Notes: generated by a model not told the origin, from the sequence alone. A stretch of 64,000 nucleotides of DNA from Auanema rhodensis (GCA_964057225.1 OZ059899.1:13020001-13084000), one strand, 5' to 3'; shown: positions 53,630 to 63,222, counted from the first letter of the stretch. Numbers and translations: made by a program.

Positions 53630-54880
53630 AAAATACAATACAATTGTTTATTTATAAATTAATTTAAAGGTAAGTTTGGAAGTTTATAAACTTCAAACTA
53701 ATTTATATATATATAATAAGCTTTAATAACAACTTTAAAACTTGATCTCATTTCAATTTGACATAATATAGATTAGATATAACAAATATTATAAAAAATT
53801 TCTAATTACTTATAAGCTTATTATAATCTAAAATATTTGAATTTCAGTTGGAGAAGCAAGGAAAGACCCACCCATAGATTATGCTCAAGTTCTATTCTTG
53901 CCAGTTTCCAGCTTAATTGATTGTTCTTGTGAATATATATAATATGTACCAAATAAACATTTCATTTTACTTTAAATAGCTATATGTATAAACAGTTATA
54001 CAGCATTACATACATACATACATACATGTAGATACATATAAGTCATCAACATTACATATCCACCCTTCGTTGTTCATCTCAAAGCTTTGTAATCAAGGAG
54101 TTTATGCTTTATGCTTGTATTATATTGTATATACGTATGTATGTATTACTTAATATAAACAGATAAAACTATAAAATATCCTTCATGTTAAACGTTTTTC
54201 TCTGCTTCCCACATTGTTTTTTCCACTTCAACTGGACTTTTTTCATCTTTTTTATTTATAAATATCATTTAGAATAGTTGTCTGATCACTAGTAGCCATT
54301 GATATAGATCTAGCACAGCTGTTCGTTCATTTGGCTTCTTCTTCTTCTTCGCCTTCTTCTTCTCTTTCTTTTTATTTTCCGAAGAGTGTAAAGTCGTTCC
54401 AAGATCTAAACAGAAGCGATTTCAGTAAGAGAATTGACAGTTGAGTTATTTATTCTGGAACATATGGATTATTTACAATATTCCCATTACTTTTCTAATA
54501 AAACTTCAAAATAAAAAAGTTAACTAGTCAATAATTGGACGGTTCATCTGACAACAATTATAAGCTTCATCTAGTCTGTTTCTAATTTTGTACTTATGTT
54601 TATAAAAAAAAACGGATTGTCAACATATGCTCATGATGGGGCTGTTCTTCTCATTTTCTTAAATCTTCTCATAATATATCTTTATTTCCATTTGAAACTT
54701 TATAAAGTAGCAATTTAAATCAAATTGATGTTATGACCAGTCAAAGCTGGCGCTTCGTGAAAGGCGATTTGACTTTTCAACTACAAGATACAAGTCATCT
54801 TCCACTTTCCCGGTATTTTCTCCGATTTTGGGCAAATTCGTCAAAAATATCTAAAAAATGCGATTTAGCATACTGTATGC

Positions 54881-57800
54881 TTATATCTTGTCTACTTCTT
54901 GCATCCATTCGTGTTTCAGAGCATCTGATGCTGCTAACCGTTTAGTCGCATCCCTGGCGAGGATATTGTTCAAAAATCCCAAAAGTTCTATAGAAAATCG
55001 GTCTTGAGCTCTGAAAATTCAGCAGCTTCTCCCTCAGTTTCAAGCTTCTCAAACCTTTTCAGAGATTCTGCGGCACGATGTGGTGGTTCTCCAAAGCATA
55101 AATGACAAATAATTGATCCAACACTCCTTCAAATTAAAAAAATTCTACAATTTTCTTTTGTTAGGCTAATTAAAACAAACCAGACGTCCGATTTTTCGTT
55201 CGGAGCCTCACCAGCTGCACGTTCAGGAGCAGTATATCTGAAAAGCGTTATGAAATGACCGTCTTATCCGGCTTTTACTCGTTTCCCCCCTCAACAATTC
55301 AATTGGGGCGATTTTTTTATTGAATTTCGAATCAGGCCAGATGATCACATTGGCAGATTGAAAGGCTAAATGGCTGACGTTAAGCTTAAAACTGATATAG
55401 TTTTCAGTGAATCCGTGTTACATTTTGTTCTTTTTTAATATTTAGCGAACAAGAAAAAGAAGAGCAAAGCTATCCTCACGTGGTATCTGCATCTTTCCAA
55501 GTATCTAATAACTTCTTTGAAGCTGATTTGTGTGATAAGTTAGTGATATTGGAAGTGTTGTTGATGGTAGGAATGCTGTCCTTCTTCTGAGCACTGCCGT
55601 AATCAATAAGAATTACTCGATCATCAACTAACAGATTGTCTGGCTGTAATATGGTTTATGAATTTAGAATCATCTTCTATTGCACACAAATATATCTTTT
55701 CAACAAAGATAGTAAACAGAGACTGACGTTAGATAGATGATGAGGTAATGATGATGTTGAAGTAAAAAATATATAAGAAGTAGCATAGTGATACCCCTAC
55801 GATTACTACTAGTAGCAGTCATAGTGGAGTAGCACCAACTAACTATATGTATAATAAGTAAGCTTGCAGCTTATCAGCATTATATGAAATCAACACACAC
55901 ACACACACACATATCCTATAATTCATCACCTTCATATCCGTGTAAACAATGCCTTTGCTATGAAGATAACTCAGAATTTCAAAAATATAACGGCATAATA
56001 ATTGAAGAACATCTTCTGTTAAATATCCCAGCTTTTCCACATACTTGGCTATATCAATTCCGGGGATTCTAAACAGGAGAGATATAGTTGTCCAAATATT
56101 TAACAGTAAGAAAACATCATAATTATCATCAGCATGATATTCATCTGATAGACTGGCCGACCTTTGTAATACTATGCAGAATCCCTTGTCAGATTCCCAA
56201 AATCCATGATACTGAGGAATGTTTGGATGGCATAATTCATTCAATATTGATATCTATAAATAGATCTCAACATATTGTTTTATAATCTTTTTGACATACC
56301 TCTCTCTGTATATCTTCATAATTTCTTTTTTTTGAAAATACTTTGCCAGCTAATGCTGTAGGATTTCCATTTTTCAAAAGATTGTATGTAATAGATGTTC
56401 TGCCACATCCTAGTACAGAGCCAAATGACACATGCTTACATAAATCTTCTGATTTCTGAATGAAAATCAGATAATTATGAGCATATTTTAGTATGTGATA
56501 CGGTGAAGCAGATGCAAGTAGCTACACCAAACTATACATACTTCAGATTCTAAGGAAAAATCTACGTTAACTTCGTTGCTGTACGAACTACGGAAGTACA
56601 CCGTATACGCAAATACTCGTATTTGATATGATGAAGCTCTAAACTGCCTTAGTGAAACCTGAAAGTACATCAGACTTCAGATAGAGGAAATGAATTTGCA
56701 GAGTAAACCTTGGTTGCAGTCAAATCTATGGTCGCAGACCAGAATGATGACATATCTTGAAATAGAAAAAGAAACTCATTTTACTTTCTGATTATAATGC
56801 ACCTGGTCTTTTATACTGAATACAATATCGCACACCAGGAGTTGTTGAAGGCTTCCAGTTCAGCTTGATAGATCGCCATCCAGTGCGAGTGAAGCATAAG
56901 TTGGTTGGAGGCTCTGAAAGCAAATCAGAGAATGAGCACCTGTCTTCCTTATTCAGAAAAAGAAAAAGCTACATTAGAAGCATAATACCTGGCTTTCGAA
57001 CTACTTTCAGTAAAGCTACCATCGCAACAACTCCATAATCATTACTAGCAATAAGCGAATATATTCCAGCATCAAGATAATCAACTGATTGTATAATTAA
57101 ACGAGTAGAATTCTCATTATTCTGCAAAATTATTAATCATAGCCCATAATCTTTGATTTTTAATTCAATTTTAACCTCAACTATTCCTCGTTTTCTTTCT
57201 AAAGCAGGTCCTCTCCAAATAGCAACATATTCAACAGGTGAAAAGATTTCTGGTTCGAATATCACTCTTTCACCTTCACGGACTAATACGTCAGCAAGAT
57301 CTTTGATGATTATTGGCTGCTTATGTTGCAATTTCATCTGAATATCAAAAGATTCTCATTTAATAGCAATTCTTCTCCGATTTACATGAGTGTCGTCTAT
57401 TTTTCTCATCAATTCGTCACCATCTACAATTGACGATAGTGGATTCGTAGCTATTCCATTCAGATCAATCTCCGACATTTGTTCATACCATTGACGACGA
57501 TACCTTTATATTTTATGATTTGATTTCATTCATTTCAAGATATCTACCTTATTTGTTCAACAAATGTTTTGCCTTTTATGTTGTTTAAATCTAAAAAGTA
57601 TGCTGGAACTTTCCCTGCTTGATTAGTCTTAGTTTGAATGGTAGCATATCCGTTTTTAACCTGGGTAACAACAACCTAAAAAATCAAATTTTCTTAGAGA
57701 ACTTGATTGAAATTTTCAAAAATTTATTCCGTTGCGGGGAATCGAACCCCGGCCTTATGGGTGAGAGCCATAAATCCTAACCACTAGACCACAACGGACA

Positions 57801-60800
57801 CAACATGGGAAAAGCACTTTGTCTTCAAGATTGATCTTGATAGAAGAAATTGAATAGCGCGCTCGTATTTAATTTGCAATCAGTTGTCTCCGAATCTTGA
57901 ATTCAATCCAGCAAGTACGTTGTCCTACCTCATCATCTTCTTTAACAGCAATTTCTCCAGGTCTTAGCGGATGATAATCACAAATAACCAAAGCATCGAG
58001 TTCCTTGAAACTATGCTCCTGAATAAAGCAATTCTTTATTCCCAGAAAACAATTCAATTTTCTTATTTTAATGAAATAATATCAATCTATATTATTGTTG
58101 AAAATTTGATTGCCCGAGGCCAGAGAAAAATGAGATGAAAATCGGCAGCTAAGCTTTACTCAACTTCAACAGGCTTTTATACAATTTTCTCATTAGCTAT
58201 TTGAGACGTATAAATCAGATCTTTAAACTTTTTAATAATCTTATATTTTATGGTTCAATATATGGCCATATAATATAACTTCTAAAGTTTTCAAGCCCTC
58301 CATTAGGTATAATGTCTTTCAATCAAATAAAGTCAATCACTTATACTATACGTATAATATATATTTCTCTCTCTTTCATCCTGTCCCTGCATCTTTTTCT
58401 CCCTAATCTCTCTTGCTCTCTATATTTGTATCCTCCCCCACCCCATCTCTCTCTCTCTCAATCTCTCTCAATCTCTCTCATCCTCTCTCTCTCTCCCTAT
58501 CTATATTTCCCTTCTACTAACGTTTCTGGCATTCTAACTTTCATACATACGCATCTTTTTTTTCACTATCCATCGATCTATCTCCTGAGCAATTTTCTCC
58601 ATTTCCGGAACTCGTCAAAATATTCCGCTCTAGCATCAGATGTTCTTGTCTCTCCAGCCATTTGCCATTTGGCCATCATTAATGCCAAATATGTACATAT
58701 ATTCTGGAGCACATTCATCAATTGCCCACGAATAGATCCTAAAGGCATTGCGATATATGAAGAGGGAGGTAGAGAGATAGAGAGGATAGCATAACGTAGA
58801 GAGATGGATATGAGAAGAAGAGAGACAGCAAAGAGAGAAGGCGTTGAAATAGGGAGCAAAGCAACAGGAGAAGAAATAAAAATAAAATGAAGAAATAAAA
58901 AGAAACTGAGAGAGTGGAAGAGATTGAAAAGAGATGGTGGTATGCATAACCACACTCTCCAGAAAGCTTACTAAGAATAGGCTAAAAGTACTTTACGTCC
59001 CTTTTACGGTTTCAAGTTTTGTTCTTGAGCAATAGAAAGATTTTTTTGCTCTACCTCTTCTCCCCCATGCGAATATGAGAAGGACTACTCATTTAAAAGT
59101 GTAAGCTTTTGCATTTCCTTATTCTGCTCTGAGCATGATGTTTTGTGCAAAAGATCATCTAGCGCATCAGATAATTCTATTCCTCTCCTCCCACCCAGTG
59201 TTTTCCCATTTTACTTCATTTTCGTTTCTTCATTTTCTTTTACTATTCGTATTAATTCAATCTTGAAGGCAATTAGTTGCGGGGCAGCCGTGCGATTATT
59301 GCGAACACGATGGCACAGCATTCTTCATTTCATCTAAACAATGATAAAAAATAGCAGTTAAAGAGGGAAGATGGAAGAAGAATGAGCTGAACTAGATGAA
59401 GACGAGAAAGATGTCTAATCCTAGTTAAATCTGAATCATCTAAATGGGTGATGATGTCCCCTGCCTCTAAATACAACCTCCCGTATGATCCTTGTTTGTT
59501 GTACGTTGTGTCTGTATCTCTATATGTGAGCTATATGCCATCTTCCTTGTGTGGCATAATGTTTCTGTGTAGAAAAAAAAACGACAAATTAGTTTATACA
59601 ATCTTTATAGTTATCATAACGGTAATAATAATTATAATAAGCATTAAACACATAGAAATCTTTCAGTCCATGTTGGCAAAAACTAAACTCATGGGCGAGT
59701 TGGTAAGATACATACAAAATGGACATGTTGTTCCGTTATTCATATGATTAAAAAAGGAAAGCAGACAGCTTATTATATATAAAAACGAAAATTCAAAATG
59801 AAATTAAACTATAAAACCATCTGGACAACGAATAGCTGTGATTTACAAGGACATGAAAAAGGAAAAATCAAACATGAAAAGAAATTGGCAATGGAAATAA
59901 AAAGATCCAGGCCGAACCAGAACTATGAGAATGTTAGCCAAAATCTTCGAAGGAACACATAAAAACACATAACATTATCTCAAAAGAGCAAGGCAAACCG
60001 TAAACGAACGTCGGGTGTTCACACAGAGCTCTCCTTCGTCAACTATATACGCTTCGAAACTCTATTGAAATAGAAGCCCTTCTAAGGAAACAAGCCACAG
60101 GTGAGAACATTAGACTACAAAATACAAAAAGATGGGCAGTATTTACATATAAATATAAGAATTTATATATTTATATATAATTATACTGGAGCCTATGGAA
60201 ACAAAAATGAAAACGGGGATGGGGGAGGAAAAGTGATAAATTTGTCTAGAGAAAGTTTCACAATAAAAATTTTCTGTAGAATTCAGTTCATACTTAGGTC
60301 AAAACAGTCTGTGCTAAACAACTGTTGTGGTTCAGACGTTGGCTTATTTTCGTTTCTAGTAAAGGTACACTACTTTCTAGCTTTGGCCATGTTTCATTCA
60401 GCCATGTCTGAATTTGCTATTATTCGCCTCAAAGAATTCATAACACTATAAAGTTGGAATTTAATGAAATTGATTTGAGTCAACAAATGATTTCGTGGAT
60501 TCAAATATCAATTTCAATACAGAAGCCTTCTCTCTAGAAGAAAATTAAACAAATCCAGAATTTAAGCCCTAATCTTGGTGTATGTAGCAATAGGTTTCGA
60601 TTGCTGGCCGCATGCTTACAATGGAAAGATATATTAAAATAATGGTTAATACGAAAGTATGGTTATTTTAGCAAGATACTTCCTAATTCCAGTTTTCGGT
60701 GAACTCAAATTTGGATTCGAATAACTTGGAACGAAAAGGAAAACCACGTGAACATTCACATACATATTGCTTGCCAGCAGCATAAAAAAGTAGGATAAGT

Positions 60801-63222
60801 TAGCAAATTCTACACAAAACCGAGAACAGATTAACGAATGTCACCGGAATACGATATGGGCTCATTTTGCATCATGGGGTTACGAGGCTTGTTGGGTATA
60901 AAAATGTGGACTATTACGCAATATTTCATGAGATAACTAGTGAATGAGCAGACTAGAATATATGGAGTAGTAGAGAGCTACAAAAATAAGACACGTGATC
61001 GTTTGAACACGGATAAAAACCTATAACACTACCCCTTTCGAAATAATAAAAGCAAACTATGCACACGAAAGAAAGGAGGAGAGAAATTATAACGCTTCGA
61101 AAGGAACTTCATAATCCGTTTCTAACTATATCTAAATGAAATTTCCTCATTTCAATTTGCCCACCGGTGGAGGCGATGTTGGTGATTTTGCTGAAGGCTT
61201 CTTGCCGAAACTGAAAAGCTTGCTCTTGCTATCCTTCTTTGGCGATTCCGGTTTTGAAGATCCAGGTTTAGAGATGTTGCCGGCTGGCCCTGCTGGAGAG
61301 CGGGGTATCGCACCTGGCGATTTTTTATCATTTGAACTGGAAAGCGATACGAAGGAATAAAAGAAATGAATAGATGTTAAACTTACAGACTCATGCTACC
61401 TAGTCCAAGATCATCCGAATTTCCACCAGAAATATACTTCTTGGGATTAACCAACTGTTCAAGCATACGCTTTTGTTGATCCTGCATATCCTCGAGTTTT
61501 CTAACCCATTCATCCTTAAACAGCTATTGTTAGCCCGAAAAAACGATTTAAAAAAACCTTCTCATCTTGAGTTTGAGCTATAGCGATGAAACTAGGCTGA
61601 CTTAAGTCAGTACTTCCGATGGTAAACTTCAAAGGCTCGTCAGATGTGACAGATTTTTGGAAAAGCATCTTATTGACCTGATAATACGTGGTTTTAAGTA
61701 AGAAATTGAGAAAAAAATACCATAATTTGATTTTTGAAGATATATGTTGGATTTCCAAATTCTTTTTTAGGAGGAATATGGTCAGCAATAATAGCAGATT
61801 GCTCAAATAAGAAAATTCGACGATCTTTTGCTCGTTGTGTATTATTACCACATTGCTCGGCAATTGATAATGTACCCTGAAACACATTATTAAAGTCAAT
61901 ATTAAGAGAGAGAAAAGAGATTTAAGGCTTATACTAAACGACTGAATGACCAAAAAAATAAGCCTAGAATGCTATAGCATAGAGCATCCTCCCCGTAAGT
62001 GGATCGACGATCGTACTATGTTTTTTTCGGCATTCAAGCTTTGACTAAAATACAGCTTCAGACATTGACGGATGCGATCCTTGTCAAAAGCCAATTCAAG
62101 GAAAATAGCGAAAAATGAACAAAAAAACATAAAATCAATAACGATGCAGAATGTTGTTAAGAAAATTGGTAAGCTAGTACGGATTATATAACAACGATAA
62201 ATACGCACCTGATGGATTAATCTTCCTTGGGCATTCAAATTTCCATCAAAGTTCTGCAATCTACCGACTTGCATCATATCATCACACGCCTTGGGAACGA
62301 CATGCATAACCTGGATTTGACAGATTACAATAAGAAAATTAAAACTAAAAGTGAACCTCTAAAGCCTTTTTGAGAGTTGTAGTATTATCTTTAGCACGTT
62401 CAGTAAACTTGAGAACATCCTTCAACAATAGCTGATATTTCATAATGCGTTGCACAGGTTTAATTAGAAGATCACATAGAGCAACTTTGTGTCCTAGCTT
62501 AGCCTTTGTTTCCGCGAAGAACTAAACATATTAATTAAATGAACGTATAAATTAATTATTATAATTGTAATATCATATCAAACAAAAGTAAAGATCACAA
62601 ACAATACTCACCACTTCAAACTCATCTTGTGAAACTAAATAATCTGATTTCGGTTTGTTCTGACAATATTTAACGTATAGAGTATGAAGACGTCGTTCCT
62701 ATAATTTCAATTTTGAAAACACAGAAATAATTAAAAAAAACTGACAAATTTAACAAAAGCGGCCCCAGCAGCGTCATAGTTCTCAATGCATTTCTCAATT
62801 TCCTTTAAGAAAGAGCTGGAAGAGAAAAATTCATCATAATACATGAATTTTTTGATTACTTTTTATGGAAATCCAAAATTTGAGCAATATTAGCAAAGAT
62901 GATCTTATCTTTGCCTTGAAGTTCAGCAGGTAACTCCATTTGATTCAGGTTAGCAATATATCCTTCTACAACTGAAGTCAGATCTTTTACATAATCTTGC
63001 TCAGTTTCTACAAGTTCCATCAAAACATAGCTGCAATTTAGATAAAATGAACAATGGATACAGAAAAAAAAGCTGATTGAAGTTTTTCAAGCATTGCTTA
63101 TAAGTTTTAACAACTTACTGTCTCTTAAATCGGGCAATTTCCTCGGGAGTCTTCTCTTGCTTTTCCGAGCTTTCCTCTTCAACTGATTCCCGAGCGACAC
63201 TCTGCTCACTCTGGTCCTCATT
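54881..63222 (-). CDS. unc-73: Trio/Kalirin orthologue, 3' part: RhoGEF2 DH-PH, SH3, Ig, FN3 and Ser/Thr kinase (5' end lies beyond the window)
   Basis: DH: [51 protein letters not shown]: RRIFLFEQ. Then SH3 ([29 protein letters not shown]), Ig ([14 protein letters not shown]), FN3 (PPTNL..IKLNWKP..YQIRVFA) and kinase (YTDMKPDN, DYG, YTAPE, SDVWS). The exact C-terminus is ambiguous; the first in-frame stop is at 54881. Confidence 0.9.
57727..57798 (-). tRNA. tRNA-Glu (anticodon CTC), intronic within unc-73
   Basis: Minus strand TCCGTTGTGGTCTAGTGGTTAGGATTTATGGCTCTCACCCATAAGGCCGGGGTTCGATTCCCCGCAACGGAA folds as a cloverleaf with A and B boxes, followed by a T5 Pol III terminator. Confidence 0.97.

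Follow-up and report, generated by a model that had tools for sequence, protein, structure and literature searches.

A predicted, divergent C-terminal kinase on the Trio/Kalirin/UNC-73 orthologue of the nematode Auanema rhodensis

Does any nematode keep, at the end of its Trio/UNC-73 protein, the kinase with which vertebrate Trio also ends? The question is raised by a 64,000-nucleotide (nt) stretch of the Auanema rhodensis genome (GCA_964057225.1 OZ059899.1:13020001-13084000; the window, with positions counted from its first letter), the minus strand of which carries, from 58018 down to 54881, a chain of exons that appears to encode SH3-like, Ig, FN3 and kinase segments beyond the second of two modules of the Rho guanine nucleotide exchange factor (GEF) type. 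We know of no established substrate or role for the Trio/Kalirin kinase, which is conserved across animals and absent from the two classic models, fly Trio and C. elegans UNC-73. Kalirin-12 ends in an Ig-Fn-kinase module, whereas C. elegans unc-73 encodes Ig-Fn without a kinase and fly Trio has neither Ig, Fn nor kinase (PMC2703648). A first-pass annotation of this DNA had described these domain ends in the same way, in agreement with the literature (PMC2703648), and had proposed that the kinase is ancestral and was lost within nematodes; the ancestral origin in animals is already published, a 2025 study having traced Trio/Kalirin kinases to sponges, placozoans, cnidarians and many bilaterians (PMC12198301). 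Within the kinome, Trio and Kalirin belong to the titin/twitchin/MLCK kinase branch (PMC3114093, PMC12198301), within the CAMK group. We found no statement in the kinome and Trio literature on a kinase-bearing nematode Trio, and the novelty here would lie in a nematode Trio gene with a kinase still at its end, unusually divergent at that.

The answer that we favor, with a probability of about 60%, is that this locus is the 3′ end of a nematode Trio/Kalirin/UNC-73 orthologue with the Kalirin-12 layout and a retained, predicted active kinase. The C-terminal module is read from 15 minus-strand exons (Table 1), every boundary of which has an AG acceptor or a GT donor and which join into 1716 nt, or 571 codons, of one frame with a lone terminal TAA. 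Their introns measure 44 to 286 nt, lengths typical for nematode genes. At the stop density of these introns (0.071 stops per codon), the probability that 571 codons stay open by chance is ~5e-19, and that of the 270 kinase codons ~2e-9; reading past the donors, almost every exon meets a stop within 1 to 28 codons (exon 8 after 17). Given the probability for the whole chain and these near-universal early stops, the open chain is not a chance pattern. The phase-0 donor quoted in the first-pass annotation is exact, ...CCA CCG/gtgggc ending at 61165 and fitting the phase-0 acceptor at 58018. The kinase motifs that it quoted are all found as well: LGCGRTS, LAGK and IQRE in exon 9, YTDMK/PDN split between exons 11 and 12, DYG in exon 12, YTAPE in exon 13, SDV-W-SVG across exons 13 and 14, and the subdomain X-XI motif in exon 15. 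Its claim of in-phase SH3, Ig, FN3 and kinase exons stands for the one open frame and for Ig, FN3 and kinase, which Pfam recognizes exon by exon, while the SH3 is a matter of sequence pattern only.

Table 1. Features of the Trio/Kalirin/UNC-73-like locus, in order of transcription (window coordinates)
Feature	Position	Strand	Basis or remark
DH2 (second RhoGEF), first part, stop-free stretch	62859-63086	minus	Pfam RhoGEF 41.2 bits, positions 1-53
DH2, last part	62348-62521	minus	Pfam RhoGEF 52.2 bits, positions 117-171; single copy in genome
PH2, first part	61697-61921	minus	Pfam SOS1_NGEF_PH 37.2 bits
Ser/Pro/Lys-rich linker exon after PH2	61165-61336	minus	donor CCG/gtgggc, phase 0; read directly
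Exon 1, SH3-like first half (ALxxxDY...EIAVKEDDE)	58018-57929	minus	phase-0 acceptor ttattcag/GAG; no in-frame Met
Exon 2, SH3-like second half	57675-57548	minus	sequence pattern
Exon 3, linker	57503-57386	minus	in frame; canonical AG/GT
Exon 4, Ig first half	57337-57176	minus	placed by position; ATG directly after ttcag
Exon 5, Ig (I-set) second half	57121-56989	minus	Pfam I-set
Exon 6, FN3 start	56913-56803	minus	Pfam fn3
Exon 7, FN3 middle	56755-56709	minus	in frame, canonical splice sites; placed by position
Exon 8, FN3 end (YQIRVFAYT...)	56658-56542	minus	in frame, canonical splice sites
Exon 9, kinase N-lobe: Gly-loop, beta3 Lys, alphaC Glu	56455-56300	minus	motifs read directly
Exon 10, kinase beta4-beta5	56253-56162	minus	Pfam Pkinase
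Exon 11, alphaD-alphaE and catalytic-loop start (YTDMK)	56068-55930	minus	Pfam Pkinase
Exon 12, catalytic-loop PDN, DYG, Asn/Thr/Ser/Lys-rich activation segment	55643-55480	minus	read directly; local profile
Exon 13, YTAPE ... SDV	55237-55181	minus	read directly
Exon 14, (W)SVG and alphaF helix	55126-55055	minus	read directly; local profile
Exon 15, subdomains X-XI, 7 more residues, TAA	55010-54881	minus	Pfam Pkinase
AATAAA, likely poly(A) signal	54681-54686	minus	195 nt past stop

To which gene would this chain belong? In a view that extended 40 kb beyond the window, the same strand carries upstream, in order, Sec14-like and spectrin-like translations, DH1-PH1, an SH3, a long linker and DH2-PH2. 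All domain searches (Pfam, solved structures, representative proteins) used single exons or natural stop-free stretches as queries. The Pfam RhoGEF and PH families match twice on the one strand, and the single Sec14-like and spectrin-like stretches, which are seen as translations only, gave no Pfam match at E <= 0.01. The best solved relatives of DH1 are TrioN (1NTY, 2NZ8) and Kalirin GEF1, and those of DH2 are TrioC (6D8Z, 61 bits), Kalirin GEF2 (8C7D) and p63RhoGEF (2RGN). The 181-Mb genome contains no close second copy of the GEF exons or of the Sec14 region. Because its DH1 is TrioN-like and its DH2 TrioC-like by best match, and because it is present in single copy, we assign this gene, with a span of ~26 kb, as the single-copy Trio/Kalirin/UNC-73 orthologue. 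Its last exon before the C-terminal module, the linker exon, is preceded by a donor CT/gtaagt at 61387 and has the acceptor ccag/T at 61336. Left unspliced, the donor at 61165 leads the frame through five codons (VGKLK) to a stop, and because of this a product that terminates after GEF2 is possible.

Beyond the linker, exon 5 matches Pfam I-set (24.5 bits, E 2.9e-5, positions 52-90 of 90, against a cut-off of 23.7 bits) and exon 6 matches Pfam fn3 (18.7 bits, E 0.002, positions 2-37 of 84). The order, a C-terminal Ig and then an FN3, is as in Kalirin-12 and UNC-73; the other halves of the two domains are placed by position only, and exons 4 and 8 had no match of their own in Pfam or among solved structures. 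The sequence pattern of exons 1 and 2 (ALxxxDY ... G-VP-YF) fits an SH3. These two exons gave no Pfam, PDB or BLASTP signal for SH3 and, compared half by half with the gene's own first SH3, no alignment; half-SH3 fragments are barely or not at all detectable even for that first SH3. The 253-nt intron that separates the two SH3-like exons holds an intact tRNA-Glu (anticodon CTC; Rfam tRNA 65.3 bits) at 57727-57798 of the window, on the minus strand, which is that of the host gene. The 3146-nt intron between PH2 and the first SH3-like exon contains a CT/TC-rich low-complexity block (~58300-59000) that gives spurious long open reading frames on both strands.

The seven last exons read together as a complete but very divergent protein kinase domain. 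Exon 10 corresponds to Pfam Pkinase positions 49-77 (13.1 bits), exon 11 to positions 84-125 (24.6 bits, E 2e-5) and exon 15 to positions 230-263 (18 bits), each fragment alone falling below the whole-domain cut-off of the family (PF00069, 31.7 bits). On a local kinase profile, exon 12 corresponds to positions 138-168 and exon 14 to positions 200-220, colinear with the Pfam order; this profile was built from matches picked by their likeness to exons 10-11 and serves as a map, not as a test. Exon 9 has no Pfam or PDB match of its own and is recognized by its motifs only, GCGRTS, a Lys 17 residues later and a Glu that precedes HPNI by nine residues. The catalytic set is present with canonical spacing: the Lys of LAGK, the Glu of IQRE, the Asp and Asn of YTDMKPDN, the Asp of DYG, and YTAPE. 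HRD is replaced by YTD and DFG by DYG, and the segment from DYG to APE extends over 47 residues rich in Asn, Thr, Ser and Lys; what the first-pass annotation gave, K/E/D/D residues, a non-RD loop and a long Asn/Thr-rich activation segment, can all be read directly in the sequence. As none of the Lys, the Glu, the catalytic Asp, the Asn and the DxG Asp has been lost, the predicted Ser/Thr kinase is probably catalytically competent; since YTD stands for HRD, it should not need activation-loop phosphorylation, as in the MLCK/titin branch. Only 7 residues follow the HEW of subdomain XI, and hence the protein has no C-terminal autoinhibitory tail, in the absence of which control of the kinase may lie with the 47-residue activation segment or with the adjoining Ig-FN3. 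Kinase exons 10 and 11 are separated by a 93-nt intron (56069-56161, minus strand) that is a multiple of three and stop-free and, if retained, would add 31 residues to the kinase with the frame kept.

Is the kinase part of the Trio gene or a gene of its own? The intron between FN3 exon 8 and kinase exon 9 is only 86 nt long, and its sole ATG meets a stop five codons on, short of exon 9. An in-frame Met is absent from exons 9 and 10, and the kinase has its first Met in YTDMK. The kinase exons cannot be translated alone as a complete kinase. The first-pass annotation had allowed that these exons might be transcribed only as a separate gene; checked on the sequence, the 86-nt intron and the want of a usable start exclude a complete stand-alone kinase. 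A separate downstream gene of the operon type is likewise ruled out, as YTDMK is not preceded by any Met in frame. Exons 1-2, too, lack a start codon; they share the phase of the linker exon behind PH2 and therefore need an upstream partner, for which this linker exon is the obvious candidate. We infer that the 15 exons are spliced as modeled into one mRNA with the upstream GEF exons, the longest product of which would comprise Sec14, spectrin repeats, DH1-PH1, SH3, DH2-PH2, the Ser/Pro linker, the SH3-like segment, Ig, FN3 and kinase. Exon 4 (57337, minus strand) opens with an ATG straight after ttcag, an arrangement that would suit a trans-spliced short product, and a shorter Ig-FN3-kinase product from this ATG is possible.

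Set beside known systems, the predicted protein resembles vertebrate Kalirin-12, the longest KALRN product, in having two DH-PH modules, an SH3, an Ig, an FN3 and a C-terminal Ser/Thr kinase in the same order (PMC2703648), and its DH1 and DH2 match the structures of Kalirin GEF1 and GEF2. It differs in that its second SH3 stands at the level of pattern only and in that its kinase, with YTD, DYG and the long activation segment, has no specific likeness to the Kalirin/Trio kinases. With vertebrate Trio it shares TrioN and TrioC as the best solved matches of its two DH domains. Like C. elegans UNC-73, it would be a nematode Trio orthologue in which two GEF modules are followed by tandem Ig-Fn (PMC2703648); the C. 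elegans protein is described as ending there, whereas here seven more in-frame exons add a kinase. The kinases of the titin/twitchin/MLCK branch are flanked by Ig/Fn domains and activated without activation-loop phosphorylation (PMC3114093), and the last kinase exon here finds its best solved matches among members of this branch; in contrast, those kinases are longer at the end: they carry a C-terminal autoinhibitory tail, and the present protein ends almost directly after HEW.

Where does the kinase itself belong? We searched 1.84 billion representatives exhaustively with phmmer at E <= 0.001, using as query the 108-residue stop-free stretch over exons 10-11. The search returned five proteins, led by a snail RSK (42.8 bits) and otherwise unnamed generic kinases, and hence no affinity of these exons to Trio/Kalirin kinases over other kinases. 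The best solved relative of exon 15 is titin kinase (1TKI, 21.9 bits, E 0.0017), with twitchin, MNK1, CaMKII and MYLK4 next; exon 15 alone leans to titin/twitchin, and exons 10-11 show no preference for that branch. In its own genome, no close paralogue of exons 9, 11 or 15 was found, exons 9 and 11 being single copy; exon 15 comes nearest to a CDK12/9-type gene, which we rejected as a relative, the two sharing the generic end motif only. The kinase comprises seven exons with six introns and is for this reason not a recent retrocopy. By sequence it is an orphan, the family of which is not fixable from sequence, and its descent from the ancestral Trio kinase is argued from position because a specific affinity to Trio/Kalirin is lacking. 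The proposal of a retained ancestral Trio kinase is thus supported by the C-terminal place after Ig-FN3, as in Kalirin-12, and not by likeness to Trio/Kalirin kinases. Retention remains the most economical reading because the position of the kinase is identical to that in Kalirin-12, and the kinase would then descend from the ancestral Trio/Kalirin kinase, retained and evolving fast.

Several observations weigh against this reading. No Trio, Kalirin or nematode orthologue is among the five phmmer matches. Among solved structures, exons 10-11 match ULK1/2 best and also STK10, RAD53 and PDK1, with DAPK3 lower, all at 18-24 bits, and exons 9 and 12 alone match none. The kinase open reading frame has no relative in a word-indexed collection; the Ig open reading frame has none there either, so that this absence says little on kinase loss or expression. 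The second SH3 between PH2 and Ig is SH3-like by pattern, an unconfirmed label. Finally, YTD, DYG, a Gly-loop with a terminal Ser and a low-complexity insert might also be signs of a pseudokinase. These same points feed the other explanations that we considered. The domain may be a pseudokinase or a decaying relic, at most a scaffold that transfers no phosphate; its extreme divergence, with no phmmer match above 43 bits, would fit, as would the altered motifs and the 47-residue low-complexity activation segment. We nevertheless consider a dead kinase unlikely, as the catalytic Lys, Glu, Asp, Asn and Asp are kept at canonical spacing, including the 17 residues from Gly-loop to Lys, and as seven exons have stayed open with intact splice sites, for which the chance of ~2e-9 in the absence of constraint was given above. 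The mixed affinities of the individual exons to different kinase groups, the failure to find Trio/Kalirin likeness in so large a search and the kinase-less UNC-73 of C. elegans (PMC2703648) are also what would be expected if this lineage had acquired the kinase by capturing exons from a different one and the domain had come by chance to the same C-terminal position. This account seems to us the least probable, given that the position after Ig-FN3 is that of Kalirin-12, that seven exons with six introns have no donor paralogue in the genome, and that the last exon leans to titin, twitchin and MLCK.

A different kind of alternative concerns not the origin of the kinase but the polypeptide on which it is made. 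The C-terminal module may be expressed, chiefly or exclusively, as a short product that begins at an internal start such as the ATG of exon 4, possibly trans-spliced at that acceptor, with GEFs and kinase on separate polypeptides. The position of that ATG directly after ttcag, the 3146-nt upstream intron, which could hold a promoter, and the early stop that follows if the donor at 61165 is not used, which would give a natural GEF2-terminated product, all point this way; the genome has SL1-like as well as SL2 spliced-leader RNA genes, and Kalirin and unc-73 are known to make isoforms (PMC2703648). There is, however, no possible start before exon 3, and exons 1-3, in phase with the PH2 linker, need an upstream partner. 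Separate polypeptides as the chief or sole arrangement are thus improbable in our view, somewhat more so than a dead kinase and less so than exon capture, and the short and long forms are not mutually exclusive.

If the reading of a retained kinase on the Trio/Kalirin/UNC-73 orthologue is followed further, UNC-73 of a rhabditid nematode would still bear the Trio C-terminal kinase, the disappearance of this kinase in C. elegans would be recent, and the kinase would have diverged far beyond any other Trio kinase with its catalytic core kept. We put this fuller statement forward tentatively, at slightly less than even odds. A nematode that keeps the kinase would date its loss within nematodes. 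It would also provide, in a genetically tractable, free-living and culturable worm, a simple genetic system for the role of the kinase beside two RhoGEF modules, and with it a means of testing a long-unexplained function. Had the kinase been gained independently, the same domain fusion would have arisen twice. Either way, unc-73 should be lengthened by seven exons in the gene models of this genome.

Some further features of the genome and of the neighborhood were noted in passing. A large array of SL1-like spliced-leader RNA genes on one strand (G000:C3:6.74-7.10 Mb) comprises at least 51 scored copies, the full-length matches scoring 54-62 bits, under the Rfam cut-off of 75 bits; the SL1-like and SL2 genes together confirm that the genome is that of a nematode. 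Around 20 kb upstream of the Trio gene, the same strand carries an RSK/MSK-type kinase gene (L006; G000:C7:13121200-13123700, minus), the translation of which has a canonical HRDLKP loop and DFG and which is a weak second match for kinase exon 11. Exons of a pyridoxal phosphate (PLP)-dependent, serine racemase/threonine dehydratase-like type are found at L005 (G000:C7:13118700-13119900, minus), and an Sp/KLF-type C2H2 zinc-finger exon (L004:9572-9739, minus) lies ~2.5 kb upstream of the Sec14-like exons and probably belongs to a separate gene.

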